From: Octopus sinensis
Taxonomy: Eukaryota
DNA length: 17,427 bases
Direction of reading: 5' to 3'
Assembly: GCF_006345805.1 (NCBI RefSeq)
Contig: NW_021824894.1
Coordinates: 1-17,427 of the forward strand
The position numbers and the translations under genes were made by a program. Numbering within the stretch: position 1 is the stretch's first letter; each line of letters starts with the position of its first letter. The notes under the pieces are model-generated. The model had not been told where the DNA came from. It was given only the letters and a program-made list of their open reading frames with translations, and did no database searches. This document shows, piece after piece, positions 1-17,427 of this stretch.

Positions 1-90
1 CATACATACATACATACATACATACATACATACATACATACATACATACATACATGCATACATACATACATACATACATACACACACACA
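1..90 (+). repeat. (CATA)n microsatellite grading into (CA)n
   Basis: Direct tandem CATA units from base 1. Confidence 0.97.
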
Positions 91-133
91 CATATCCACG
101 TATACATATGATATCCCATATGTACATACAGAT

Positions 134-216
134 GTGTGTCTGTGTTTCTCTGTGTGTGTGTGTGTGTGTGTGTATGTGTGTGTGTTTTTGTGTGTGTGCG
201 TGTGTGTCTGTGTGTA
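134..216 (+). repeat. (TG)n microsatellite, imperfect
   Basis: TG run; explains the CVCVCV part of ORF 134..367. Confidence 0.95.
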
Positions 217-968
217 TTTAGTCCTTACCTCGCAAATGAATATGTACAGAGGACCTAACAAGGGGAAGAAATCAGTAAGAAGTGATCGCTCGACCGTCGA
301 GAAACAGCAGCCAAATATCGTTCAAAACGAACCTTTCTATTTCCATAAAGCAGGACACTTTGGATAGTATAGTTCTATATAGATAAATAGGGAAGGAAAG
401 AAAGAGACAGAAGAGTGGAGAAAGATTGTGCATAAATGAAAGAAACGGGCGTTCTAAATACACTATGAAAAGAATATCTACCAACAGTGATAACAGATTG
501 TCATATCTAAAATATCTTTGAACATATATCTTCTCTATCAGGTCTGACCTATGGTTAAACAGTAAAAAGAACAACAGTCAGTACTAGAGTATGTAGTCTG
601 CTCACCAACATGTATTCCAGCGCATCTTATATTAAATGGATGTTTTAGCAGAGAAATGGATCTCTGCCTCTTGTCATTTTATTTTCTGCCTCGTATCCGA
701 TTTTCAGATATGAAATTTAAAAGGTTTCTTTTTCCTTATATTTTAATGATTCAATAGACAATGTCTTTTAATACTGTTGCTATTGGACACGGAAATTATG
801 AAGATGTCGATCCTTCACTCCCACGCGAATCGATTTATTGATTTTTCTATGCTATATTGCAATATTAATATCATTTCTTTTCTCCACAATATGAAACTAT
901 CCGCCTGGTAAGAGAGAAAGTCTGGTGATTTGGCTACTGTAATCAGTCAGCTGGGTTAAACAATGTTT

Positions 969-1065
969 GAAAGATAGAAAGATAGAAAGATAGAAAGATA
1001 GAAAGAGGGAAAGAGAGAAAGAGAGAGAGAGAGCTACAGTGATAGATAGATAGATAGATAGATGA

Positions 1066-1149
<84 letters not shown>

Positions 1150-1275
1150 ACAAATAGGCTGATAGAGAGAAAGAGACGGAGTGATATATAGATATGGAGA
1201 TAGATAGACAGACAGACAGAGACAGACAGATAGATAGATAGATAGATAGATATACAGACAGACAGACAGACAGAC

Positions 1276-1359
<84 letters not shown>
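969..1359 (+). repeat. Compound (GATAGAAA)n/(GA)n/(GATA)n/(GACA)n microsatellite
   Basis: Direct tandem units; source of the three LSIYLSIY minus-strand ORFs. Confidence 0.97.
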
Positions 1360-1750
1360 CGAGGAAGAAAGATAGAGAAATTGGTACGTAAACAAGTAGA
1401 AAAGTACATACGTGAGTTAGTAGACAAATTGACTGACAGAGTAGTTTATAGAAATCTTCAGATTTGTTCGTTATACAGAACAGGGGAGACAATTAGAAAA
1501 TTTTGGTATTTCAGTAATCACGCAGCAACCATGGTGGGATTTCACAATCTAAAGTATTATTCGATCACACAAACCCCAGTAAGATATATCTATATATATA
1601 TCTATATATCTTACTTTGGGATGTAAATACTCACACGACGGAGCTAGTTCCAGCGATGCGCGCACATACAGATAAAGAGAAGCACACATATACACATGCG
1701 CGCACACTCACATGTATGTGTGTATCTACGTGTATATATGTGTATATATA

Positions 1751-2130
1751 AGGCGACGAGCTGGCAGAAACGCTAGCACGCCGGGCGAAATGCGTAGCCG
1801 TATTTCGTCTGCCGTTACGTTCTGAGTTCAAATTCCGCCGAGGTCGACTTTGCCTTTCATCCTTTCGGGATCGATTAAATAAGTACTAGTTACGCACTGG
1901 GGTCGATATAATCGACTTAATCCTTTTGTCTGTCCTTGTTTGTCCTCTCTGTGTTTAGCCCCTTGTGGATAGTAAAGAAATAGGTATTTCGTCTGTCTCT
2001 ACGTTCTGAGTTCAAATTCCTTTCATCCTTTCGAGGGTCGATAAATTGAGTACCAGTTGCGTGCTGGAGCCGATCTAATCAACTGACCCTCTCCCCAAAA
2101 ATTTCGGGCCTTGTGCCTAGTGTAGAAAAG
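1751..2130 (+). mobile_element. tRNA-derived SINE, dimeric form
   Basis: A-box-like ctggcagaaacg; B-box gagttcaaattcc present twice (about 1824-1836 and 2008-2020); core gtcgactttgcctttcatcctttcggg..aagtac shared with the copy at 7737-7950. Confidence 0.85.
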
Positions 2131-2332
2131 TATATATATATATGTGTGTGTGTGTGTGCGTGCGTGTGTGTGTATGTGTGTGGATGTTTTTCTCTTCCTC
2201 TTTTTAATTTAGAATAAATATATTTATCTATCTACTTGTTTGTCTGTCTAGCTATCTTCGATCTGCCTGTATATCTATATCTATCTATATACATATACAT
2301 GATCATATATATGTATGTATGTATGTATATAC

Positions 2333-2650
2333 GGCGGGTAAAATTCCGGACATCCATGGACGAGTTCTGTCCACCGGTCCTTGTCCCTCATCATCGCTGT
2401 CATGTCCTGCGTCACCCAGTGTCAACATTTGTCATCCTCAGACTCCCTCTTCTAGTGTATCATGTAGGGGTTCCCACAGTGCAACCCATCAGTTTTCTCA
2501 CGTGATAAGAATCACAGTCTATGCTGGTTGACTCACAAAAGACATATTTTGAGAATTTCTGACAAGTTCCATCCATTCCATCCACGATATATTTATTTGA
2601 ACTCTCTCTCTTTCGCTTTGCTGAGATTCCCATAATGAGATTAAAGCTGA
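2333..2650 (-). mobile_element. Possible decayed 3' end of an RTE-like LINE
   Basis: Manual minus-strand translation gives ...DMTAMMRDKDRWTELV, resembling the RTE C-terminal AMxDRxxWRxxV motif; stops and frameshifts present. Confidence 0.35.
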
Positions 2651-2892
2651 AGGAACATCTCTTCGCAACAGTAAATGCAAATTAAACCGTGTTACATTCA
2701 CCCTTGTATGGCTTTCAAGAAGGTATTTGCTCTAATTTTCAGTACTGTAAGATGTATTCGTGTCGAAAGGGACAATTTCTAAGAATATGAAGTTCGAATG
2801 TAAATAATAAATGAAATACATTAGTGGTTAAAGTGGTTAAAGTTCTGAGGTTCTTTTCTTAGACTACATCAAGGATCTTTCTAATATTTGTA

Positions 2893-2970
2893 TATGCATA
2901 CGTACATGTGTGCATATGCGTGAGTATATCTACGTATGTATGCATATGTATATATGTGTGTATCTGCATG

Positions 2971-3006
<36 letters not shown>
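2893..3006 (+). repeat. (TA)n/(TG)n low-complexity tract
   Basis: Direct dinucleotide repeats. Confidence 0.9.
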
Positions 3007-3009
<3 letters not shown>

Positions 3010-3289
3010 AATTTCATAATATGTGTAATATTATCCACTACTTTCAGGATGCATTGAAACAGCTGTAAAGACTTAATAATAGCTTCTTCCATATAATGAT
3101 GATCGCTTGTTCATATCCCATTAATGATATTTGCTATAGCATTTTCTAGCCTACTTTCCGGATTCTGCAGTGTCTACTTTGATTGAAAAGTTGGATTTTA
3201 ACAATTACAACTGCCTGAGCACAAACTTTGTTTTTATATGTTCTTGTGTAAGCATCGCCATATATGTCTGCATATGGGGCGGGGTGCTC

Positions 3290-3811
3290 TCCAATGCGCT
3301 AAAATGGTCAAGTAACCCTCTGACGTATTTCCTACAAAAAGTCAACTTCAAGTTCGGCATCTCCTTTAGCCTTTTGCACAAGTTCGCTGCAATAACAGCC
3401 CCCAACTGGTCACCGTCAATATTTCGCAGCTTTTCTCATTTTCATGGTTCTCATCTTCACCGCGGAATTTTTCGGAACCAACATTGAGTTCTACGTTTGT
3501 TATTAGTTCCCAGTAAAATCATTAGTCGTGATTTGGTTTACTCTCCGCGGATTTATATCTCATTTTGAGACGGTTCTATGAAAATAGCACTAATTTTCGT
3601 TTCATTTTGTTTTTTTTCCTACCTCTTATTCGATAACATAAAATAAACCAAGATATACAGGTAAAGTAATCCATTAACATAATTCCATAGAGCACAATTT
3701 TCACTTTCAAAACGGCTCTTCTTTAAGAGAGTAGTTACAGATGTGTCTATTCCAAAATAAACATCACGTTTTAAAGCAAGAAAATCTGCAGTTACTTTTA
3801 CACCAACCTAA
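3290..3811 (-). mobile_element. Decayed Hsmar1-like (cecropia-type) mariner: 5' TIR plus N-terminal transposase remnant
   Basis: Minus-strand ttaggttggtgtaaaagtaactgcagatttt (3811-3781) resembles the Hsmar1 TIR TTAGGTTGGTGCAAAAGTAATTGCGGTTTT. Frameshifted peptides KISAIF, LKMRYKSAE, GTNNKRRTQCWFRKF and IDGDQLGAVIAAN parallel Hsmar1 KQIRAIF, FKMGRKAAE, GTANERTVQWWFKKF and VDNDQLRAIIEAD. May extend to a weak TIR-like tract near 2821-2853. Confidence 0.8.
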
Positions 3812-3888
3812 TGTATATAAATGTATAATGTATATATACATGGCTGCATATATATGTGTGTGTGAGTGTGTGTGTGTGCGTATATATA

Positions 3889-3977
<89 letters not shown>

Positions 3978-3978
3978 T
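3812..3978 (+). repeat. (TA)n/(TG)n microsatellite
   Basis: Direct dinucleotide repeats. Confidence 0.93.
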
Positions 3979-4299
3979 AAAGACTCCGCCGGTTACGACG
4001 ACGAGGGTCCCAGCTGATACGATCAACGGAACAGCTTGCTCGTGAAATTAACGTGCAAATGGCTGAGCATTCCACAGACCGTGTACCCTTAACGTAGTTC
4101 TCGGGGATAATCAGGTGACACAGAGAGTGACAAGGCTGACCCTTTGAAATACAAGTACAACTCATTTTTGCCAGATTGGTGGACTGGAGCAACGTGAAAT
4201 AAAGTGTCTTGCTCAAGGACACAACGCGTCGCCGGGAATCGAACTCACAACCTTACGATCATGAGCCGAATGCCCTAACCACTAAGCACGCGCCCTCAC
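3979..4299 (-). mobile_element. tRNA-derived SINE with CORE-like domain
   Basis: Minus-strand A-box gtgcttagtgg (4289-4279), B-box gagttcgattcc (4246-4235), then CORE-like gtgtccttgagcaagacactttatttcac. Confidence 0.85.
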
Positions 4300-4300
4300 T

Positions 4301-4530
4301 AATGTAGATATATATATATAGATAGATAGATAGATATATACGTACATCTATATATATATATGAATTATATATATATTATATAAATATATATATATAATAT
4401 ATATATATATATATTATATGTGTGTGTGTATGTATGAATGTATGTATACATATATATATATGTATGTATATGTATATGTGCATAACTATATATTAATATG
4501 CATGCATATGTATAGTTATTGTGCGTGTAT
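4301..4530 (+). repeat. (TA)n/(GATA)n/(TG)n compound microsatellite
   Basis: Direct repeats. Confidence 0.92.
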
Positions 4531-4685
4531 GTCTGTGTGTCCTTGTGTTTCCGTGTCCTTCCATCAGGTCAGAGTTAATCATCGTCTTTTAAAAGGTTTT
4601 TTACACAGCTTATAATTTTAATTTTTTTTTTTAATCTTTCCAGATATTTGTAATTGTACCAAATGATTTTTCTAAAACCTTTTTC

Positions 4686-4699
4686 AATATATATATTAT

Positions 4700-4765
<66 letters not shown>

Positions 4766-4778
4766 TGCATGTATATGT
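4686..4778 (+). repeat. (TA)n microsatellite
   Basis: Direct repeats. Confidence 0.92.
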
Positions 4779-4940
4779 ATTCAGTCATCTCATGAATAAT
4801 GTTAACTGCATGAACTAAAACTCGGAGGGATACGGGATAAATTACCAGCATCAACTTGATATAAAAGCAGATAGTAATTATACCTTGACTTATTCTTAGT
4901 GCGAGTTCGATTTTAACAGTTATTTTTTTCAAAGCTAATA

Positions 4941-5772
4941 ATGCAAGTGACAAAGGAGCATATTCGGTATATTTTGATCTGTTGGTTAAATAAAGGCAAC
5001 AACGCAACGGAAAGTGCTTGGAATATTAATGGGGATCGGACAATAAACGTAAGCTAGCGTCAACGGTGGTTCCAGATATTCCGAGCCGGAAACTACAGCC
5101 TAGAAGACGAGCTTCGTTCTGCAAATGCTGGTGGAACAAAATACCATCATAACCGTTGAGGAACTAGCAGAGAAGTTTGGATTTGGTCTTTCAACTATTC
5201 ATCGACACCCGCGTGCCATCGGAAAAGTCAGCAAATTGGGTTAATGAGATCCTCACAAACTTTCCGAGTGTAATCGGAAACGTAGCGAATGGATGTGTGC
5301 TCTTCTTTGCTGTCACGTCTCACAAATGAACCTTTTTTGAACAGAATGGTGACTGGTGACGAGAGATGGGTTCTCTATAAAAGTGTCAAGCGCCGAAGAC
5401 TGTGGTTAGGGAAAAAAGAATCACAAGCATCCCAGGCTAAAGGTTTTCACCCACGTAAGATGTTATTTTCTGCTTGGTGGGATATGAAAGGTTTAGTCCA
5501 CTTTTAACTTTTAAAGCCAGACCAACCGATTAGAAAGGAGATCTACTACGAGCAGCTTATGTCAGCGCTTGAAGGAAAACGACCATTTTGGTTTCAAGAC
5601 GAAAGGTGTTCTTCCATCGGGATAATGCTCGGCTACATACAGCGAGGATGACATTTAAAAGGCTAGAGCAGTTTGAATAAGAAATGATGCCCCATCCACC
5701 ATATTTGCCGGATATTGCTCAATCTGATTATCATATATTCCGCAGTTTTCAAAATCATTTGGATGGAAAAAA
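4941..5772 (+). pseudogene. Mariner DD34D transposase pseudogene, 3'-truncated
   Basis: ATG at 4941: MQVTKEHIRYIL..QRWFQIFRAGNYSLEDE, ..PHKL, VTGDERWVLY, HPRKMLFSAWWD, HRDNARLH, PHPPYLPDIAQSDYH. Exactly 34 codons (one now a stop) separate the second and third catalytic Asp. Multiple stops and frameshifts; homology ends at NHLDGK. About 4779-4940 is probably the 5' TIR/UTR (no partner TIR seen). Confidence 0.95.
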
Positions 5773-6084
5773 TAAAGATCCGGTCTTTTGGCTGTCATTG
5801 TTATATGACAGCCAAAACACAGGATCATTAACGAGAGACAAGTTTATGTATGGACGTATCTGATGAAACCCAGACTGCAAAATTGATACAACACAACATG
5901 TTGAAAAGGAGTCCCACCTAAGGAACACTAACTAGCAGGGTGGCTCGAAACGACCGTTGTACAAAATTTATATCCCGATTGCAGATGACACCAGGTAGCC
6001 CAAACTGCGCCAGTGCTTTACTCAACGCTTCAAAGCACTAATCGACATATAACTATTAGTCCAAAATGTTAAACATGTTTATTT

Positions 6085-6103
6085 GTGTGTGTGCGTGTGT
6101 GCT

Positions 6104-6160
<57 letters not shown>
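6085..6160 (+). repeat. (TG)n(TA)n microsatellite
   Basis: Direct repeats. Confidence 0.95.
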
Positions 6161-6162
<2 letters not shown>

Positions 6163-6173
6163 TTATATCTAAA

Positions 6174-6472
6174 GTGGTTTCAGAGTCATGTTTTGGCTGC
6201 TAGCGTGGTGGTATCTCTTAGATACCCTAAATTATAATCTTAATAATTATTACCTTTGAAGGTTTTTATTCCCATTCTGGCCACCTGATAAGATCGGTAT
6301 TTAAATAACGAATTATATTTACTGTGGTTTTAGAGTTAAGTTTTGGCTGCTATTTCTAGCGTGGTGGTATCTCTTAGATACCCTAAATTTTAATAATAAT
6401 TATTACCTTTCAAGGTTTGAAGGTTTTTATTCCCATACTGGCCACCTGATAAGATCGGTATTTAAATAACGA
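6174..6472 (+). repeat. Two-copy tandem duplication, unit about 150 bp
   Basis: 6174-6311 aligns with 6324-6472 (gttttggctgc...ggtatctcttagatacc...gccacctgataagatcggtatttaaataacga). Confidence 0.92.
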
Positions 6473-6494
6473 TCTTATACTTATTTATATAAAT

Positions 6495-6604
6495 ATGTGT
6501 GTGTGTATAAGCATAAATATACATATATACACATACATATATACACATACATATGCATATACATGTGTATATATATATATATGTGTGTACGTGTATGTAT
6601 GTGC
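6495..6604 (+). repeat. TA/TG/CA low-complexity tract
   Basis: Direct repeats. Confidence 0.88.
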
Positions 6605-6932
6605 TGTTTTAAGCCAATTCCTAATACTTTTTTCCACACTTCAATATTTATGCGTAGTTAATTTTCTGTTGCTGTCAGCAGTCACTAAGTTAAACATCGT
6701 TAGCTTAGTCAGGTTCCTCTGCATCTTTCTTCAGCGTTAATGACATTCATAGCAATTCCTTCATTAATAAAATATTGTAAACCTTCATGATATATCAAAA
6801 GAACATGAAGCGACGAAACAACTTTTTCTTTTAATATTATTTATTATTAATGTTGTTTGCACATTTAATGAAATGATGGCGAATAGTTGTTGCTGTACTT
6901 CCTGTTTCATTAAAATATTTACTTTAAAGTTT

Positions 6933-7460
6933 GGGCTTGCTTGTGTGGTTAAGAAACTCACTTTGCAACGACGTGGTTTCGTGTTCGGCCCCGACTCGCG
7001 GTTCCTTTTTGCACAATTGTTGGATCTTTTCTCTTTGAACAGCAGATCGAGAAATTATTTTTTTTGTAACGGTAGAATGTGTCATATAAAATATATTTTA
7101 CTCGTAGTGTTGCTGAGAAAAGTTTATATTTTCAAAGTTATTTCGTGTTAAAGTAGTCGTACTCCGGTAATTTCAACCAATCAATGACGTATACTCAGCT
7201 GAATAAAATTATTGCCGTTGTTTGTCAACAACAACTATTGGCGAAATAACTTTGAAAATACAAACTTTTCTCAACAACACTAAGAGTAAAAGATGTTTTA
7301 TATGACACATTCTACCAGGGTCCGAAGTTTGAAAGTGTTTAGTTACAAACAATTAATTTCTCGATCTGCTGTTCAAAGGAAAAAGATCCCAATTGTCTTC
7401 TAATGTCTCCGACCAATGTCTTGTGAGTGAATTTTGTAAACGGAAACTTTGCAGAAGTGA
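6933..7460 (+). mobile_element. Degenerate tRNA/CORE-like SINE split by a MITE
   Basis: The head gtgtggttaag..gtgttcggcccc (6933-7013) and body tgtcttct..ccgaccaatgtcttgtgagtgaattttgtaaacggaaact (7394-7456) join into a sequence colinear with the SINE at 14465-14618. Confidence 0.7.
7021..7390. mobile_element. MITE/foldback DNA element with long imperfect inverted arms (about 125 and 150 bp)
   Basis: 7022-7145 is the reverse complement of 7242-7389 apart from a 25-nt indel and substitutions; flanked by the direct repeat caattgt (7014-7020, 7390-7396). Confidence 0.85.
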
Positions 7461-7609
7461 GTGGACAAACGAAAGAAAGCCCATATATTCTTGTAACGCA
7501 CTTCCAAGACTTTGATTTGTATGAAACTGAATCAAAATGCTTTCAATAATAATGTATATAGGATGGACCAAAACGCACCAAAACATTTGACATTTTATCT
7601 ATACTAAGT

Positions 7610-7661
7610 TATCATCATCATTGTATTCATCATCACCATCATCATCATCATCATCATCATT

Positions 7662-7705
<44 letters not shown>

Positions 7706-7736
7706 AATTATTATTATTATTATCATTATTATTATT
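7610..7736 (+). repeat. (CAT)n followed by (ATT)n
   Basis: Direct trinucleotide repeats; source of the poly-D/poly-N ORF 7599..7790. Confidence 0.96.
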
Positions 7737-7950
7737 AAGGTGTCGAGCAGGCAGAATTCTTAGTATGCCGGGCGAAATGCTTAGCGACATTTAGTCCGTC
7801 TTTCCGTTCTGAGTTCCAAATCCGCCGAGGTCGACTTTGCCTTTCATCTGCTCGGAGTCAATGAAATAAGTACCAGTTGAGTACTGGGGTCGATGTAATC
7901 GAATAACCCCCCTCCCCCAAAAATGCTGGCTTTATACCAAAATGTGAAAT
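7737..7950 (+). mobile_element. tRNA-derived SINE, monomeric relative of 1751-2130
   Basis: gcaggcagaa A-box-like, ttctgagttccaaatcc B-box-like, shared gaggtcgactttgcctttcatc..aagtaccagttg..tggggtcgatgtaatcga core. Confidence 0.85.
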
Positions 7951-7990
7951 CATTATTATTATCATTATTATTATCCTTATTATTATTATC

Positions 7991-8053
<63 letters not shown>
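7951..8053 (+). repeat. (ATT)n microsatellite
   Basis: Direct repeats. Confidence 0.96.
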
Positions 8054-8607
8054 GAGTGAGAGAGCAGTTCATGCCATCAAAGTGACACTGGAGTAGAATA
8101 TACGAAACCCAATATACCCATCATGATTACCCGTCTGATAAAGGTACACCAGGCACATGCATCACAGCCATATGTGCGCGACATGGTGATCTCATATCAA
8201 GATAAACAGCACATGACCTTGCAGGTGGGGCCCAGTTAGAATTTTTCTTCAGGTTGAGTAGCCCATCCCGCTCAAAAGGTCCCTGAATAAGGGTTGTTTA
8301 AGGATGTTGAAAGAACCACCCATGTTTCCAGAGGTGAATTATTCAAACCCCAAAGAATCCCTCTCAACAGATGGCTATGATGCTCCCCACTACTTCTGCT
8401 CGTGATCAGAGATGCACATGTCGTCAGCCACTAAGGGACATGCTCAACTGGTTAAGGTCAAACAACTGACAAGCAAATCTGTGGTATTGAGCAGAATATT
8501 TGCTGTAGCCCATCTTTTATACCAAGACAAAACAATGTACATGATAACACTTCCAATCAGTTAAGATCAGAAGCCATGAGAGCCACTGCCTGGTACTGCA
8601 TCAGAGC

Positions 8608-8611
<4 letters not shown>
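8054..8611. repeat. 558-bp (ATT)n-flanked non-coding module, copy 1
   Basis: Near-identical to 10123-10651 and, in part, 10849-11140; no ORF of 60 aa or more. Confidence 0.92.
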
Positions 8612-8677
<66 letters not shown>

Positions 8678-8680
<3 letters not shown>

Positions 8681-10107
8681 TAGTTTTATTTTTATAGCGT
8701 GCTTTCACTTCACTACCGAGCACAGCTCTGTGTGCTTTGGGTATGTGTTGTGATTTCTTGTGATGCTCTGACGGTTATTGTATGGAAAGTGTTCTGCGTA
8801 GGATGTGTGCAGTGCCTAGTAGTGCAATTTTCTGTATGTTATATGTGTTTGTAAGTCCTGGTGTTTTTGTTATGTATTTGTCTGAATATTTTTTTATCAT
8901 GCCTAATGCACCTACTATGATAGGAATTGTTTCTGTTTTCAGATTCCACATTCTAGTTACCTCTATTTCCAGGTCTTTGTATTTTGAGAGTTTCTCCATT
9001 TCTTTTAGAGACACGTTGTCATCAGCCGGTATTGATACATCAATTAGAAAGCATTTTTTTTTATTCATGATCTCTGACAACTATATCTGGTCTGTTGGCC
9101 TTAATTTCTCTATCTGTGTGTATCGGCATATCCCAGAGTATGGTTGCTTTCTCGTTTTCTGTGACCTTTTCTGGTGTGTGCCTATACCATCTTTTTTCTG
9201 TTGTTATTCATAATGTTGGCATAGCTTCCAATGTATGTAGGTTCCAACTCTGTCATGTCTGTGAATATATTCCTTCTTAGCCAAGACTGGGCAGCTAGAG
9301 ATAATATGATTTATTGTTTCTTGTCCATCTCCACATATTCTGCAGTTACTTGTAATATTTCTTTTCATTACATGTTTTTGGTAATTTCTGGTGGGGAGGC
9401 TTTGGTCTGTTTCTGCTTTGAGTCCTGAGCTTCTCAACCATTGCTGGATTTTTCTTTGTCTATTTCTTTTGCTTTAGTTTAGTCCAGTATTTACCATGAA
9501 GGGGCTTTTCTTGCCATCGTTTTATCATGGTTCGTTGCTGTTCTGTTTTTAGTTTGGATTTCATTTGTTTTATAGCTTTTGTTGTTTCTCATCTTCTTCT
9601 TCTTCATGTTTATTAGGTGGTATGATTTCTTGTTTGTATTTGTCAGCTTCCTTAAATACTGAGAACAGTTTTGTTTTGCTCGTGTTTTGCCGCTATCTGG
9701 ATCAGTTTTCCTTCCTTCTGAAGTAGATATTTTTGCAGTCCTATGGTGGTTATTTTATAGTAGTTTTCCAGCTGTATAAGGCCTCTACCACCTTCTATAC
9801 GTTGTTATATAGTCTTTCTATGTCAGATTTTGGGTGATGCATCCTAGATCCTGTCATTATTTTCTTGTTTTCCTATCTATTTTGGTCAGTTCATTTCGTG
9901 TCCAGTTAAGGATATTGTAGCTGTAACTTATAACTGGGACAGCTAAAGTGTTGATACCTATTATCTTGTTTTTAGCATTGAGCTCTGTGTTTAGTATTGA
10001 TCTAACTCGTCTATAATATTCTTTTTTTATTTTCTCTTTCATTTGTGTGTGTTGTGTCTTATCTAGTTCATGGATTCCTAAGTATTTGTAAGTTTGGCTT
10101 TGGTCTA
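8678..10107 (-). mobile_element. 5'-truncated, degraded R4/Dong-type non-LTR retrotransposon (RT C-terminus, CCHC knuckle, restriction-like endonuclease, 3' UTR)
   Basis: TYKYLG..KEYYRRVRSILNTELNAKNKIIGINTLAVPVISYS; CRICGDGQETINHIISSC..RHDRVG; NRPDIVV..IDVSIP..EKLSKYKDL..IPIIVGALG. (AAT)n on both sides of the sense strand. Confidence 0.92.
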
Positions 10108-10122
10108 ATTATTATTATTATT

Positions 10123-10651
10123 GAGTGAGAGAGCAGTTCATGCCATCAAAGTGACACTGGGGTAAAATATACGAAGCCCAATATACCCATCATGACTACC
10201 CGTCTGATAAAGGTACACCAGGCACATGCATCACAACCATATGTGCGCGACATGGTAATCTCATATCAAAATAAACAGCACATGACCTTGCAGGTGGGGC
10301 CCAGTTAGAATTTTCTTCAGGTTGAGTAGCCCATCCTGCTCAAAAGGTCCCTGAATAAGGGTTGCTTTAGGATGTTGAACGAAACACCTATGTTTCCAGA
10401 GGTGAATTATTCAAACTCCAAAGAATCCCTCTCAACACATGGCCATGATGCTCCCCCACTACTTCTGCTCGTGATCAGAGATGCACGTATTGTCAGCCAC
10501 TAAGGGACATGCTCAAATCTGTGGTATTGAGCAGAATATTTGCTGTAGCCCATCTTTTATACCAAGACAAAACAATGTACATGATAACACTTCCAATCAG
10601 TTAAGATCAGAAGCCATGAGAGCCACTGCCTGGTACTGCATCAGAGCATTT
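10123..10651. repeat. (ATT)n-flanked module, copy 2 (29-nt internal deletion)
   Basis: Colinear with 8054-8611; lacks ctggttaaggtcaaacaactgacaagcaa. Confidence 0.92.
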
Positions 10652-10678
10652 ATTATTATTATTATTATTATTATTATA

Positions 10679-10713
<35 letters not shown>

Positions 10714-10714
10714 T

Positions 10715-11157
10715 CAGTAGTTTTATTTTTATAGCGTGCTTTCACTTCACTACCGAGCACAGCTCTGTGTGCTTTGGGTATCAACACTTTAGCTGTCCCA
10801 GTTATAAGTTACAGCTACAATATCCTTAACTGGACACGAAATGAACTGACCTATGTTTCCAGAGGTGAATTATTCAAACTCCAAAGAATCCCTCTCAACA
10901 CATGGCCATGATGCTCCCCCACTACTTCTGCTCGTGATCAGAGATGCACGTATTGTCAGCCACAAGGGACATGCTCAACTGGTTAAGGTCAAACAACTGA
11001 CAAGCAATTTGTGGTATTGAGCAGATATTTGCTGTAGCCCATCTTTTATACCAAGACAAAACAATGTACATGATAACACTTCCAATCAGTTAAGATCAGA
11101 AGCCATGAGAGCCACTGCCTGGTACTGCATCAGGGCATTTTCTGCATCAGGGCATTT
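10715..11157. repeat. Mosaic: Dong 3' UTR piece, inverted RT piece, partial module copy 3
   Basis: 10715-10781 copies the Dong 3' end at 8678 onward; 10777-10851 is the reverse complement of 9884-9958; 10849-11140 is the distal part of the module; 16-bp duplication ctgcatcagggcattt at the end. Confidence 0.9.
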
Positions 11158-11380
<223 letters not shown>

Positions 11381-11544
11381 TCATCAATGCAAGTATGTGT
11401 CTATTCATTATTATTTTATTTATTCTATTCAATTTTAGAAAAACTGAAGCGTGTCTTGGACTATTCCGGAGCATTCTGAACTGATTTTGTGCATGACTTT
11501 TGGTTCACTCTGTACATTTCCTTGTATATTTCCTTTCCTGTGGT

Positions 11545-11910
11545 ACTCTTCCAAAATGTTAAAAGAAGGTGTAATATGCCCTGTCCATCAGAGCTGATGC
11601 TAAAAATTACAGGTCTATCTCTCTGAGCTCAAAAGGTCATGCAACGCATTGTCAAAAGAAGGCTAATCACGTTCCGAGAATAAAATAGACAAAAACACAA
11701 CATGGCTACCGTCGAAGGAAGAGTTGCCTCACACAGCCACTACAGCATTATGACCGGATACTGAAACGGCAGTTCAACCACTCATATGTGGATGTGAGAT
11801 ACCACAGCTTTGCCAAGGCCTGTCACAAAATGCGTGATCTTGGTATTGCTGAAAAATTAGGAGAGGGACCGCATAACGATTTAGATGTCAAATGTCAGAC
11901 AATATTTTAA
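11545..11910 (+). pseudogene. CR1/L2-group LINE reverse-transcriptase fragment
   Basis: Manual translation NYRSISL..KVMQRIV..TQHGYRRRKSCLTQPLQHYDRILKRQFNHSYVDVRYHSFAKACHKMRDLGIAEKLGE matches the pattern YRPISL..QHGFR.GRSCLTQL..VD.IYLDF.KAFD of CR1-group RTs, with deletions and stops. Confidence 0.8.
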
Positions 11911-11926
11911 AAACAACAGAGAATGT

Positions 11927-12080
11927 AGTTCTATATTTAAGAGATGAGGAATTATGTACATTATTTACATTATTTACAATATTTACATTCGACGGATATT
12001 TGTCCTCATCTTGTTTGTTGTTAACAGAACGTTTCTTGAGGAAATTTCGAACCTGGGTTCAAAAAGTATTTTTCGATATT
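11927..12080 (-). mobile_element. Left (inverted) arm of HHR-bearing palindromic element; ribozyme core deleted
   Basis: Reverse complement of 13641-13799, lacking the 33 nt of 13690-13722 but retaining gaaacgtt. Confidence 0.88.
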
Positions 12081-12096
12081 GTTATCGTTATTATTA

Positions 12097-12143
<47 letters not shown>

Positions 12144-12172
12144 TATTGTTATTGTTCATGTCATATGCCCGC

Positions 12173-12238
12173 GGGCATATGACGTAGTGGTTAAGAGTGC
12201 GGGCTACTAACCCCAAGATTCCGAGTTCGATTCCAAGC
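12173..12238 (+). mobile_element. tRNA-derived Pol III head (A and B boxes) directly followed by (AAT)n
   Basis: A-box tgacgtagtgg 12180-12190; B-box agttcgattcc 12224-12234; anticodon-like stem-loop cggg-ctactaa-cccc; no acceptor-stem closure, so not a functional tRNA. Confidence 0.8.
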
Positions 12239-12254
12239 AATAATAATAATAATG

Positions 12255-12318
<64 letters not shown>

Positions 12319-13582
12319 GAGGGAGGCCGTGGTCTTTTGCAACTGGCAATAACAATGAAGATTGCTACAATTGGCCTAGACACCTACCTGAAAAACTCTG
12401 AGGACTGGATGTTAAAACTTGTCTCAAAACATGAAAACAAGAAAGCATCATACTCAGTCACAAAACAGGCAAAGGAATATCTAAGTGAATTCCGAATACA
12501 ACCAATTTCGGAATTAGAGATAGACATACAAGAAACAAGCACAGAAAAAGCTAGGCGCATGAAAACCCGTGCCAAAACTGCGGCCTTAGATATTCTGAAT
12601 AATAAATGGCAAGAAAACCTCTCTGTGGCAAATACCCAAAGAGAGCGAATAATGCAGATATCGACAAAGCCCTGACCCATCAATGGCTAATGGCCTCTGG
12701 CTTAAAATCTGAAACAGAGGGGTTTATCATAGCAGCTCAAGATCAATGCCTACCAACGAGAAACTACCTGGCCAACATATTAAAGATCAGAAGCAGTCCA
12801 ACGTGTCGTGTATGCAAGCAACAAAATGAAACCATTGACCATGTGGTCTCCAAGTGCAGTCTTCTAGCGCCTACAGAGTATCTCAACAGGCACGATAGAG
12901 CTGCACAATATATTCACTGGGTAATCTGTAAAAACCTGGATTTGCCCCATGAAAAAAAACTGGTGGGAACACAAACCACCCCCAGTGCTTGAAAATGACC
13001 ACATCTCACTCCTCTGGAACTTCACCATTCAAACTGACAGGAAGATAGATGCAAATAGGCCAGACATCATAAAGAAGACTTCAAACAAAGAACATGCCTC
13101 CTCATTGATATGACTGTCCCAATCGATATAAACGTATCTGTCAGGACCTACCAAAACTGAGCAAATATAAAGATCTTGAAATAGAAATCAGCAAAATGTG
13201 GAAGCTGAAGACTAAAACAATACCTGTTGTCATAGGTGCCCTGGGAATGATAGCAAAGGGGCTGATAGCTACCTAACTCAGATACCAGGAACCCCAAAAA
13301 TGGCAGAAGTTCAAAAGATAGTGCTCATGGGAACTGCTCATATCCTACGCAAAATAATCTCTATGTAACCTCAAGGTTTAAAAACAACCATAATTTTCGG
13401 TTTAAAAAAAAAAAAAAAAAAACTTTTTTTTTTAGACATTCATTAGTACAAACATCCCCCCCCCAAATATATGGCACACTAGGCATAACAACAACATGAA
13501 CCTCCAACCCTGTTGTCTCTTGAGGTCTCTGGGTGAGACTTGGAGCCAACTTGTACAAATATAAAGCAAAAGTCAAACATAG
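12319..13582 (+). mobile_element. Second 5'-truncated, frameshifted R4/Dong-type LINE
   Basis: EGGRGLLQL..; GLKSETEGFIIAAQDQCLPTRNY..CRVCKQQNETIDHVVSKC..RHDRAAQYIH; NRPDII..IDMTVP..KLSKYKDLE..IPVVIGALG; 3' UTR gaggtctctgggtgagacttgga. (AAT)n at 12239-12318 and 13583-13641. Confidence 0.92.
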
Positions 13583-13604
13583 AATAATAATAATAATAAT
13601 AATA

Positions 13605-13640
<36 letters not shown>

Positions 13641-13642
<2 letters not shown>

Positions 13643-13799
13643 TCGAAAAATACCTTATAAATGAGAACCCAGGTCCGAAATTTCCCCAAGACACCTGAAG
13701 AAGGCTGGAGGTTATACCAGCCGAAACATTGTGTTAACAACAAACAAGATGAAGACAAATATCCGTCGAATGTAAACAATGTAAATAATGTAAATAATG
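13641..13799 (+). mobile_element. Right arm of HHR-bearing palindromic element (PLE terminal-repeat-like)
   Basis: Inverted homologue of 11927-12080; ends in tandem aatgtaaat units; contains the HHR motif. Confidence 0.85.
13690..13735 (+). ncRNA. Minimal type I hammerhead ribozyme motif (helix III variant ACAU)
   Basis: Helix I gacac/gtgtt; core CTGAAGA 13695-13701 plus an extra A; helix II ggctgg/ccagcc; GAA 13723-13725; ACAT-T where the sister copy has ACGT-T. Confidence 0.75.
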
Positions 13800-14209
13800 A
13801 ACAGAGAATGTCTTAAGGGAAATTTGACTGCTATTTCTGGGATTTTTAATAACCACCTAGAAGCTCGCTTGTTAGCTCGCCTCGCCTTATATGTAGTAAA
13901 AGTTACGCGTGCATTCAACAGTGATTAGTTGAAAGACTTAACTCATTTGTAACATAATTTACAGTTTGAGTAAATTATGCATAATAGTCATTATATAGGA
14001 CTACGATCAATGTAATTGTAAACTTGAAATGGTTTAACTGCTTCATAAGAGGATTTATTGTTTTAATCGGTTATAACGCTGCCATGATATAATGATATAA
14101 TGCTATACAACTACCACGCTTATAATGCTCCGGTCATTACACGGTGATATCAATAGCTGTGAATTTAAAGGAATTCATTCATGGGGAAATTTGAATTAAG
14201 AATACAACC

Positions 14210-14246
14210 ATATATATATATGTGTATATATATATATAATACATAC

Positions 14247-14291
<45 letters not shown>

Positions 14292-14301
14292 ATATATATC
14301 C

Positions 14302-14342
<41 letters not shown>

Positions 14343-14375
14343 CATAAATATATACATATATACAGATATATATAA
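14210..14375 (+). repeat. (TA)n/(CATA)n microsatellite
   Basis: Direct repeats. Confidence 0.95.
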
Positions 14376-14464
14376 ACACGCATACACAAACGTAGGAAGC
14401 TACTAATGCCAAACAACACCACAGTATCATGAATATGTGTTCGAATGCATGCATATATATGTAT

Positions 14465-14618
14465 AGGCGTAGGAGTGGTAAATAGCTTGCTTACGACCAC
14501 ATGGTTGCGGGTTCAGTTCCACTGCGTAGTACCTTGAACAAGTGTCTTCCATTATATCCTCGGCCCACCAAAGCCTTGTGAGTGGATTTGGTACAGGGAA
14601 ACTTAAAGAAGCTCGTCG
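14465..14618 (+). mobile_element. tRNA/CORE-like SINE, 5' half, running into (TA)n
   Basis: ggagtggtaa A-box-like; gggttcagttcc B-box-like; gtaccttgaacaagtgtcttcc CORE-like. Confidence 0.82.
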
Positions 14619-14651
<33 letters not shown>

Positions 14652-14652
14652 G

Positions 14653-14686
<34 letters not shown>

Positions 14687-14688
<2 letters not shown>

Positions 14689-14864
14689 TGTGACAATTAT
14701 TCGGTTGCCAAAATAAAACTCCGACTTTCGTCTCGTTCGGGGCGGAAATCTGCTCCGGCATCTCGTCTGTCTTAATAACTGATGAGATGCCGTACAAGCA
14801 TTCCCGCCCGCCCCGACATCCGAAAGTCGAGTTTTATTTATGCCAACCGAATAACTGTCATATA
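14687..14864. mobile_element. About 180-bp foldback element within (TA)n (MITE-like or HHR-bearing PLE-type palindrome)
   Basis: 14687-14730 pairs with 14821-14864; 14737-14745 with 14808-14816; 14756-14764 with 14784-14792. Confidence 0.85.
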
Positions 14865-14934
14865 TTATATTACAGATAAATTCCTCTATTTACATAATAT
14901 CGAGGTCTCATTCATTCTTTTGTTGTCATACCAT

Positions 14935-14966
<32 letters not shown>

Positions 14967-14969
<3 letters not shown>

Positions 14970-15177
14970 TGTGTGTCTGTGTTTGTCGCCCCCCAACATC
15001 ACTTGTCAACCCATGCTGGTGTGTTTATGTCTTTATAAATTAGAGGGTCGACAAAAAACAACGATAGAATAAGTACTAGGCTTACGAAGAATACATCTTG
15101 GGGTTGATTTGCTCGACTAAAAGCGCTGCCCCAGCATGCCCACAGTAAAATGACTGAAACATGTAAAACAATAAAAG
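14967..15177 (+). mobile_element. SINE 3' half, probably the continuation of 14465-14618
   Basis: aataagtactagg..tggggttgatttgctcgact resembles the SINE core at 1877-1918; A-rich tail. The link to the 5' half is inferred. Confidence 0.6.
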
Positions 15178-15187
15178 AATATATATA

Positions 15188-15397
15188 CCAGAGTAAGCAC
15201 ATAGATGCGAAGCAAGGTGGTAAAAATAGTACTCGAATACCAGAAGTATAGTAATATGCTTTAATAAAAAGCTGCAATACTTTCACATTTCTGTTCGTCG
15301 GAAAGGTTTTGTTTAGAATTCTAAACAAAACTGTCCAATGAACGGGAACATGAAACTCTGAGTGACAGTTTTTGTGTTATTTTTGCTGCTTTTTGAT
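15188..15397. mobile_element. Asymmetric palindromic element with divergent HHR-like motifs
   Basis: Perfect 26-bp palindrome at 15306-15331; the arms beyond it are inverted homologues, each with a hammerhead-like core. Confidence 0.75.
15327..15372 (+). ncRNA. Degenerate type I hammerhead fold, probably inactive
   Basis: Helix I aaaactgt/acagtttt (8 bp), core ccaatga, helix II acg-ggaa-cat, GAA, helix III act-ctg-agt, position 17 = G. Confidence 0.6.
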
Positions 15398-15513
15398 AAT
15401 ATATATACATATGTTTACATATGTATATATATATATTATATATATATATATAATAACATTATTGGTGAATTGAAGAATGGAGCTGAACGCAGTTTGAACA
15501 GAAATCGTTTTAT

Positions 15514-15602
15514 TATCATTCTACACGTGTTTCGAAAGGCACAAATTACCAAAATCACGATTGAATAATGGGACCATATTGTGTCTTTTCTTCAGGAAGA
15601 AA
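15514..15602 (-). ncRNA. Mirror hammerhead copy on the minus strand, lacking G10.1
   Basis: Minus strand CTGAAGA (15595-15589), aaagacac..gtgcctttc, GAA, palindromic helix III ACACGTGT (15530-15523), then A. Confidence 0.65.
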
Positions 15603-15989
15603 AAAGAAATCCTTGGAAAAACAAAAACAGCACAAGGCAGAGCAAAAACAAATCGAACTGTGCTCCTAAGAGCCCATGGCGAAATGTTTTACAGTGTATG
15701 TTGAGAACCGTGTGGCTGAAGAAAGTAACAGGATTGCCATAGGTCAGATCGTCAAACATGTGGGTGGGGGTGTATAGATGTTCTTTGTGACCGAGAACTT
15801 TATTCTCGTCACAATAAATCTATACACCCCCACCCACATGTTTGACCGATGCCTGACCTGTTGAATTCTTCAGCCACCGGTTCTCAACATACACTGATAA
15901 ACAGTTTCGCCATGGGCTCTTAGGAGCACAGTTCGATTTGTTTTTTGCTCTGCCTCTGTTCTGTTTTTGTTTTTCCAACGGATTTCCTT

Positions 15990-16076
15990 TTTCTTCCTGA
16001 AGAGAAAGACACAATATGGTCCCATTATTCAATCGGATTTTGGTAATTTGTGCCTTTCGAAACCGTGTAGAATGAA
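15990..16076 (+). ncRNA. Type I hammerhead ribozyme with complete catalytic core
   Basis: CTGAAGA 15997-16003; helix II gaaagacacaa/ttgtgcctttc with G10.1-C11.1; GAAAC 16059-16063; GTA triplet 16067-16069; helix I ttcttc/gaatga (one mismatch). Confidence 0.78.
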
Positions 16077-16286
16077 TAAAACGATTTCTGTTCAATCTGC
16101 GTTCAGCTCCATTTCTTCAATTCACCAATAATGTTTAATTTCAATTATCCGCCACCAACAACGCCGCAACGGTTTGCAACGCCAGATGGTTGTACCTCAC
16201 CGTGCTGTTCACTGCTGTGATTTTTGCTACTAAGATCGGTTAACTTTTGATTAATCCACTAAAGATTATTCATCTTTATATTTCAC

Positions 16287-16289
<3 letters not shown>

Positions 16290-16325
<36 letters not shown>

Positions 16326-16340
16326 GATAGATAGATATTA
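16290..16340 (+). repeat. (TA)n(GATA)n microsatellite
   Basis: Direct repeats. Confidence 0.93.
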
Positions 16341-16874
16341 TTAGGGTATTTTGGCGCCTTAAATAACAGTTTTGACTGTTTATTTCCAGCAGGCAGACAT
16401 ACTTAGTATGTCCTTTGATTAATTTTAAGCCCTCCACTATTTGATGCCTTTGGATGGGGGGCTGCTATCGCCTATATTATTGATTCTGTTATTATCATTT
16501 TAAATTGTTACACTAGATAATAATAGAGTCAATGATATCTTCACAAATTAATTTGTCATGAATTATTTGCTCCGTATTGAAATATATATATATATTTTGG
16601 TAACATTAGGATTATGCAAATTAAGCTCCTATTTCATTATGCCGGCTACCGTTCAATGATACTGACTTGTGAGTGAGATTTTCGGAGTTGTTTCATGATT
16701 ATACCGATGCAACCCTGAAATAACGTGATATAAATACAATAAAAACGATAATACCAGATGTGATGTCTACCTGCACACCATCTCTCAGTACGGGTTAATC
16801 TGAAGGAGATTTGTTTACTATTTCTAGCTTGCGAATTGATTGTGGCCTAGTACAAACTGCCTTGCATGACACTT

Positions 16875-16966
16875 GCCTTATCGGCACTGAGGAGATAAAA
16901 GGCAAAGACTAGTCGACGAGAAGATTTGAACCTAGAACCTAGTTTGACATTTTAACCAATTCAACC
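16875..16966 (-). mobile_element. Highly decayed SINE head
   Basis: Minus strand ggttgaattggttaaaatg..aggttcaaatc..gtcgactagtctttgccttttatc resembles the 1751-family head and core. Confidence 0.4.
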
Positions 16967-17079
16967 GGCGTGTTGCACTGAAAAGCCGACCGTTCGATCT
17001 TTTAGTATTAATTATATGTTACAATATTTCACCTTATTCTTTGATTACATAAATCCATTTAAACAACAAACAGCGAAGA

Positions 17080-17427
17080 AAATAATAATAACGGGAACAA
17101 CAAACTCAACATCAATGGTAACAGCTACACAGAACAATAACAACAACAACAACAACATCAGCCAAACAACGGCACCTTCAATGACAATACTGTCACCAAC
17201 AACCAAAACAAGAAGCATAACAGCAATACCAGAACTTTCGAGAACAACAACAATAAACAAACAAGGAAACACTAAACATACAAACAATAATATTTCTTTC
17301 TAGAAACAGACTTCAAACCCAAAGAATTATACAGGAATCAACAACAACAACAACAAACAAACAAAATGGAAACAAACACCGGGAAAAAAATGGAATTCAA
17401 ATAAAGGAATAAGCAACAAGCAGCAAA
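17080..17427 (+). repeat. Degenerate (AAC)n / A-rich low-complexity tract
   Basis: aacaacaac runs and imperfect derivatives to the window end. Confidence 0.85.

Follow-up and report, generated by a model that had tools for sequence, protein, structure and literature searches.

A palindromic, (AAT)n-linked block in Octopus sinensis with a predicted minimal hammerhead ribozyme and features of Penelope-like insertion

Anatomy of the block

We analysed a stretch of 17,427 nucleotides from Octopus sinensis (RefSeq assembly GCF_006345805.1, contig NW_021824894.1, positions 1 to 17,427; referred to as the window), which is AT-rich and contains many microsatellites. Our subject is a nested block at positions 11915-13811, for which an earlier, sequence-only reading had proposed a tRNA-like head with an RNA polymerase III (Pol III) promoter, an (AAT)n linker and a hammerhead ribozyme module, arranged in mirror image around a short palindrome, split by a long interspersed element (LINE) of the Dong type and bounded by a target site duplication (TSD). 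The features of the block are the following.

11915-11926 (no strand): left 12-bp direct repeat AACAGAGAATGT (TSD); adjoins the element end, and the homology of P0001 and P0041, two Octopus bimaculoides open reading frames (ORFs), stops at 11926/11927
11927-11958 (-): 32-nt 'tail' extension of the left copy only; not in the right arm, kept in P0001 and P0041
11959-12076 (-): left, inverted copy of the 3' module, with the hammerhead core deleted and GAAACGTT retained; deletion junction at 12035/12036
12077-12159 (-): (ATT)n, the counterpart in the inverted copy of the (AAT)n linker, with both ends degenerate (microsatellite scan)
12160-12183 (no strand): perfect 24-bp palindrome; its left half, 12160-12171, repeats the initial 12 nt of the head unit as an inverted stub
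12172-12238 (+): tRNA-like Pol III head, with +1 at 12173, box A at 12180-12190 (TGACGTAGTGG) and box B at 12224-12234 (AGTTCGATTCC)
12239-12318 (+): (AAT)n linker, 5' of the LINE insert (microsatellite scan)
12319-13583 (+): 5'-truncated fragment of a Dong/R4-type LINE, a secondary insertion; PF13966 zf-RVT domain and (AAT)n on both flanks
13584-13642 (+): (AAT)n linker, 3' of the LINE insert (microsatellite scan)
13643-13799 (+): right copy of the 3' module, tail-less, with three 9-mer repeats followed by the end ...GTAAATAATG; the same end is seen in L023, a Logan contig
13690-13735 (+): predicted minimal hammerhead of the type known from Penelope-like elements (PLEs); descriptor match and minimum-free-energy fold
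13800-13811 (no strand): right 12-bp direct repeat (TSD); repeat search and flank shuffle test

A direct-repeat search of the window recovered the 12-mer twice, at exactly the two positions proposed for it, and a local alignment of the flanks, used as a test for a direct repeat, scored above 99.6% of shuffles; one further pair of 12-mers, unrelated and due to chance, occurs within the same 2.3 kb. The palindrome, whose axis lies at 12171/12172, the mirrored arms, the switch in microsatellite polarity and the inserted LINE fragment were likewise all found where the sequence-only reading had placed them. When the reverse complement of the left arm (11959-12076) is set against 13643-13799, 118 bases align at 92.4% identity, interrupted by one indel of 6 nt and one of 33 nt. 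The microsatellite scan gave (ATT)n to the left of the palindrome, at 12077-12153, and (AAT)n to its right, at 12239-12318 and 13583-13642. Comparison of the flanks revealed none of the inverted similarity beyond the outer ends of the arms that would be expected for a large palindrome. The left arm reaches 32 nt further out than the right one, and these bases (11927-11958) had been left out of the earlier description of the block as a mirror image.

A predicted minimal hammerhead and the two ends of the module

The right arm contains the core of a minimal hammerhead ribozyme (min-HHR). Helix I (GACAC/GUGUU, 13690-13694 paired with 13731-13735) has 5 bp and is flush with the core, in which both catalytic boxes are present (CUGAAGA at 13695-13701 and GAAA at 13723-13726). 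A single unpaired A (13702), situated between A9 and G10.1, is followed by the 6-bp helix II (GGCUGG/CCAGCC, 13703-13708 with 13717-13722), in which G13703-C13722 provides the G10.1-C11.1 pair. Between GAAA and the 3' strand of helix I there is just CAUU, leaving no helix III loop, and U16.1 and U17 form an NUH site at the predicted cleavage position, after U13730. The unconstrained minimum-free-energy fold consists of exactly helices I and II (z = -2.66). A script encoding the full min-HHR descriptor matched the window only at 13690-13735, with a chance expectation of 0.0007 per window and 0 matches in 3000 dinucleotide shuffles at the observed helix lengths. For the core and helix II alone the expectation is 0.005 per window, and this pattern gave 0 matches in ~130 kb of unrelated eukaryotic loci.

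These features are shared with the min-HHRs of the pseudo-LTRs (pLTRs) of PLEs (PMC4209133): their boxes are CUGANGA and GAAA, one nucleotide ahead of stem II stays unpaired, G10.1 and C11.1 form a pair, helix II is long, helix I is short and flush, and a helix III loop is absent. By its sequence and predicted fold, 13690-13735 thus belongs structurally to the PLE min-HHR class: it fits every structural item of the descriptor except the palindrome at positions 15.2/16.2, and its cleavage is predicted. In the left arm, the 33 nt that correspond to 13690-13722 are missing, and with them the 5' strand of helix I, CUGAAGA and helix II. Since P0041 contains the block that is missing there (...PKTPDDGWRVYQLK...), the gap is a deletion; P0041 keeps both hammerhead boxes at the codon level. 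Hence, of the hammerhead modules claimed for both sides, the right one has the core and the left one has lost it. A second CUGAUGA...GAAA combination in the window (14779-14825) was rejected as a chance occurrence; its stem has just 4 bp and lies within a hairpin resembling a miniature inverted-repeat transposable element (MITE).

Translations of the element match only 'uncharacterized proteins' of O. bimaculoides and one Logan contig. Five copies of the module were seen, namely the two arms, L023, P0001 and P0041. L023 (Logan SRR11869385) is an independent and more diverged copy of (AAT)n joined to the module; the contig starts within (AAT)n, the hammerhead core is decayed, reading CTAATGA, and the 9-mer repeat occurs twice, compared with three times in the right arm. 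Since each of the three DNA copies, L023 included, has (AAT)n ahead of the module, the linker is a feature of the family, and the proposed joining of (AAT)n to the hammerhead module is borne out by an independent copy. ORFs across the module at 13661-13816 (+) and 11892-12182 (+) match the O. bimaculoides UniProt entries A0A0L8FV75 and A0A0L8H9T6 (each an 'uncharacterized protein'); these gene models are probably transposon-derived ORFs and not genes. When JGI metagenome contigs were scanned for exact matches to a 19-mer from the module, only two chance matches of 19-23 nt appeared, and neither the head, the module nor other short interspersed elements (SINEs) of the window were found in the Tara metagenome and long ENA animal contigs reached via relatives of the Dong ORF.

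The independent copies define two ends. At the tailed end, the 32-nt extension is conserved in P0001 (VLYLGDGEL...) and P0041 (...VHNSSSLKYRT), and both lose homology at 11926/11927, the latter being the first base beyond the 12-mer. The tail-less end ...GTAAATAATG recurs in L023 (1-180), beyond which unique DNA follows. Because each end recurs, we conclude that the module has two alternative 3' ends ~32 nt apart, and because P0041 has the core block and the tail together, the tail-less right end is a variant end. We had considered the 32 extra bases of the left arm as an argument against a TSD; this was dropped, as P0001 and P0041 show that the extension is the element's own. The homology of P0001 fades partway into the module, as in a 5'-truncated retro-copy, judged from the protein only.

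PLEs offer an explanation for such ends. Their insertions may have a 'tail' of 30-40 bp, an optional extension that often occurs on just one of the ends, next to an adjoining copy in inverted orientation (PMC8557442), and in vitro a PLE protein cuts and extends both target strands, with two reverse transcription start sites that bracket the tail (PMC11167929). The mechanism therefore predicts an inverted twin with one tailed and one tail-less end, and a target duplication of 12 bp. The block displays these hallmarks, in agreement with the PLE-type insertion traits that the sequence-only reading had pointed to: a 5'-adjoining inverted copy, a 32-nt tail on one end only and a 12-bp TSD. Mobilisation of the arms by PLE-type machinery is thus well supported, and we regard it as likely.

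The tRNA-like head and the Dong insertion

Box A and box B of the head have one mismatch each and lie 33 nt apart, a combination for which we roughly estimate a joint chance of ~0.005 per window. The head aligns collinearly with the head of a SINE at 4296-4224 (-), with a score of 37 as compared to 14 ± 2.7 for shuffles. Because it stops just past the B box, leaving T stem and acceptor stem each without a 3' strand, it has no cloverleaf. The proposed tRNA-like Pol III head is supported by the promoter boxes and by the likeness to a SINE head. The SINE used for comparison is a canonical tRNA-derived element of ~310 bp (3985-4296, -) flanked by (TA)n, with the same B box AGTTCGATTCC as the head at 12172-12238; with 22.7 bits, its own head stays below the gathering score of the Rfam tRNA model. 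GTDB genomes and IMG/VR gave no matches to the head at 12172-12238.

Counting back from box A, the tRNA-like +1 falls on 12173, and the palindrome axis lies 1 nt before it. For the right copy, the start thus falls on position -1 of a unit of the Pol III type, which is expected of a full-length cDNA. The same axis is the exact point at which the microsatellite changes polarity, and to its left stands the 12-nt inverted stub of the head's 5' end. Taken together, the position of the axis, the polarity flip and the stub favour a single unit of head, (AAT)n and hammerhead. The sense strand of the head and the right module has no T4 run. That head, (AAT)n and module formed one composite unit appears reasonably probable to us, with the membership of the head deduced from this arrangement.

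The 1.27-kb insert at 12319-13583, which splits the right (AAT)n, is 5'-truncated and frameshifted. It encodes the C-terminal zinc finger of a reverse transcriptase (RT; PF13966 zf-RVT), followed by a frameshifted region resembling a restriction-like (REL) endonuclease and a 3' untranslated region (UTR) that ends in ...CATAG before (AAT)n; on both sides (AAT)n runs in the polarity of the insert. Zinc finger, REL-endonuclease-like C-terminus, 3' junction with (AAT)n and insertion into (TAA)n are all as in LINEs of the Dong/R4 clade, from which the insert differs in its truncation and frameshifts; the clade is assigned by these features and not by phylogeny. Of the LINE groups of O. vulgaris, Dong-R4 is reported to be the most active (PMC13282606). 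Within (ATT)n at 8679-10112 (-) lies another Dong-type LINE, likewise 5'-truncated and with a PF13966 zf-RVT domain; the only PDB matches of its intact C-terminal ORF (8778-9080, -) are R2 proteins, at a weak E of 0.27. Each of the two Dong fragments has (AAT)n on either side, running in the direction of the fragment itself. The suggestion that Dong later hit the linker is thus supported by the zf-RVT domain, the REL-like region and the (AAT)n on both flanks, as for the second copy.

Several further sequences in the window touch on Dong and its sites. Two pieces at 10716-10781 and 10777-10851, one a 3' end and the other an inverted internal piece, are 100% identical to the Dong copy at 8679-10112, and the inverted piece adjoins a partial copy of a repeat of ~540-570 bp; the two pieces could reflect a 5' inversion of the twin-priming kind, a recent segmental duplication or an assembly artefact. 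The repeat is present in two full copies (8044-8610 and 10113-10650, ~91% identical) and one partial copy (10849-11139). Both full copies sit in (ATT)n, with the same polarity on each side, and neither A/B boxes nor a hammerhead core were seen in the repeat. It looks like a non-autonomous, (TAA)n-site-specific element, which possibly depends on Dong.

Origin of the block and related systems

We tentatively lean towards an explanation of the whole block as the fossil of one retrotransposition event, in which PLE machinery acted on a small non-autonomous RNA and which was later hit by Dong; the balance of the evidence is somewhat in its favour. The element is probably a ribozyme SINE resembling schistosome Sm-alpha, inserted as a PLE-type twin. 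The earlier idea of one insertion with a 5' inversion is retained as to the inverted copy and the TSD, but is better described as an inverted twin, that is, two cDNAs meeting 5' to 5'.

The course of events that we propose is deduced from the anatomy of the block and from the published in vitro behaviour of a PLE protein. The RNA would have consisted, in this order, of the tRNA-like Pol III head, an (AAU)n linker, the PLE-type minimal hammerhead and a 3' region of ~70-100 nt. A PLE endonuclease would have cut both target strands ~12 bp apart, and both 3'-OH ends would have primed reverse transcription, with a distal start giving the 32-nt left tail and a proximal start the tail-less right copy. 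Both cDNAs would then have reached the 5' end of the RNA and joined 5' to 5', which would create a perfect palindrome with its axis 1 nt before +1. End-to-end template jumping by RTs is known. The greater part of the left copy's head (nt 13-67) may have disappeared during reverse transcription or afterwards, and 33 nt of its ribozyme at a later time, while the right ribozyme may have acquired a G-to-A change at position 16.2. In a last step, a 5'-truncated, (TAA)n-targeting Dong/R4 LINE would have entered the (AAT)n of the right copy.

A number of observations weigh against this proposal. An autonomous PLE (RT plus GIY-YIG) sharing the module was found neither in the window nor in the protein searches with the module, which yielded only short ORFs. 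Rfam cmscan detected no hammerhead in the whole window (E<=1) or in the module alone (E<=10), a negative that fits a min-HHR because the Rfam models do not cover this class. Positions 15.2/16.2 are C/A (ACAU) in the right arm and in L023, and not the palindromic C/G; ACGT is found in this region solely in the left-arm remnant. Palindromic positions 15.2-16.2 permit a dimeric helix III in min-HHRs (PMC4209133). A CpG transition is a plausible cause of ACAT in the right arm; L023 has ACAT too. As for the head, ARAGORN, run on the window, and the Rfam tRNA model, run on the head, recognised no tRNA or cloverleaf, which fits a truncated head because the models do not cover one. A second copy of the head was not found: a search of 1.84 billion representative proteins with its open frame returned three spurious weak matches. 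The linkage of head and module hence rests on a single locus, and the survival of just 12 nt of the left copy's head calls for an extra event.

The main alternative is a history of two separate elements, to which we assign a minor share of the probability. Here the arms would be 5'-truncated PLE twins with (AAT)n in their pLTR, and the head with its (AAT)n would be a 'simple' SINE, mobilised by Dong, that landed later in the centre. Truncated PLEs are considered to account for most min-HHRs in genomes, and opposite-strand pairs of them, at distances of 100-700 bp, are frequent (PMC4209133). The (AAT)n tracts of the window attract site-specific elements (the two Dong fragments and the ~540-bp repeat), in the block (AAT)n follows the head directly and in Dong's polarity, and no other copies with head and module were found. 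Such a history, however, requires the head to land exactly on the base of the polarity flip and to retain no (AAT)n 5' of it, whereas the other (AAT)n-embedded elements in the window show one polarity on both flanks; the 12-nt inverted stub of the head would need a separate explanation.

Two further alternatives act at the level of DNA. If a single copy of head, (AAT)n and module had been duplicated in inverted orientation, by fold-back repair or through template switching during replication at the 5' end of the head, the perfect 24-bp palindrome at the junction and the mirroring of stub, microsatellite and module between the arms would follow. Yet this predicts neither a 12-bp direct repeat at both outer ends nor arms that end at two positions, each recurrent in independent copies, and the inverted similarity stops at the arms; we consider this origin very unlikely. 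Even less credible, in our view, is a DNA transposon of the foldback or MITE type, with the arms as its terminal inverted repeats and with nested insertions in its centre. It would explain the long inverted arms and the flanking direct repeat, but not the unequal ends with a 32-nt extension on one side, nor the strand-specific ribozyme motif in the arms. The independent copies (L023, P0001 and P0041) are moreover solo arms followed by unique DNA, and P0001 loses its homology partway into the module in the style of a 5'-truncated retro-copy (seen in the protein only). To our knowledge, a 12-bp TSD is also atypical among the known superfamilies of DNA transposons.

Among known systems, PLE min-HHRs likewise occur as inverted pairs a few hundred bp apart (PMC4209133), and the octopus block has the hallmarks of PLEs in common with them, namely the inverted adjoining copy, the one-sided tail of 30-40 bp and the TSD. 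It differs in having no PLE ORF or pLTR, ~55 nt between ribozyme and (AAT)n, a tRNA-like head at the 5' side and, in its right arm, non-palindromic positions 15.2/16.2. The architecture is akin to that of the schistosome retroposon Sm-alpha, named in the sequence-only reading as a precedent for a tRNA-like promoter combined with a hammerhead. According to PMC2770079, the SINE-like retroposons Sm-alpha and Sj-alpha (Ferbeyre 1998, Laha 2000, cited in PMC2770079) also unite a tRNA-like head with Pol III boxes and a hammerhead in one short element; as described there, Sm-alpha differs in a canonical type I hammerhead, which Rfam detects, and in a head called tRNA-Gln by tRNAscan. The octopus locus has instead a minimal, PLE-type ribozyme and a head without a cloverleaf. 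We know of no description of an internal (AAT)n linker or of PLE-type twin and tail ends for Sm-alpha.

Non-LTR retrozymes of animals (PMC7229834) resemble the octopus element in being small, non-autonomous, AT-rich, hammerhead-bearing and thought to depend on PLEs, with TSDs of >4 bp, and they have been proposed to be PLE derivatives (bioRxiv 10.64898/2026.07.22.740005). They are built of head-to-tail tandem repeats with canonical type I hammerheads and are expressed as circular RNAs, in contrast to the inverted pair, the min-HHR and the Pol III-type head of the octopus locus, which has no tandem copy. Because its copies are not tandem, the octopus element is by definition not a retrozyme. 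What sets it apart from Sm-alpha and retrozymes is that a PLE-type minimal ribozyme, a Pol III head, an (AAT)n tract in the interior and twin/tail ends come together in one element; we regard it as a variation on a known kind of element, and do not propose a new class. Full-text literature searches returned no description of hammerhead-bearing SINEs in cephalopods.

The locus itself is likely inactive now, a dead nested transposon fossil for which a host function is improbable, and its interest is in the family to which it points. We raise, as a possibility that we consider less likely than not, that octopuses harbour a family of tRNA-headed SINEs with a min-HHR and an internal (AAT)n, which are copied by PLEs and not by LINEs and which, in dispersing (AAT)n over the genome, seed (TAA)n sites for Dong-R4. 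This would amount to a three-way dependency of a Pol III SINE, a PLE and a site-specific LINE. Should the unit of head, (AAT)n and ribozyme prove to be a genuine family, it would offer a clear example, outside flatworms, of a PLE mobilising a Pol III-driven SINE. It would help to explain the large share of 'unclassified SINEs' in octopus genomes, the origin of thousands of orphan min-HHRs and how microsatellite-specific LINEs such as Dong obtain so many targets. The insertion scars can be regarded as an in vivo echo of what the PLE protein does in vitro, with both strands primed and two RT start sites.

Elsewhere in the window, a fragment of a mariner-type transposase is present at 5289-5504 (+; Pfam Transposase_1, E 3e-7), and a MITE-like hairpin element at 14690-14860 has inverted ends resembling gacaattattcggttgcc.../...ggcaaccgaataactgtc. 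Dozens of sub-threshold Rfam 'miRNA' matches (mir-3149, mir-297, mir-1277 and others) were rejected as composition artefacts of TA, TG and TATG microsatellites; these artefact stretches lie at 1-175, 2880-3010, 4415-4500, 6480-6610 and 14200-14390.

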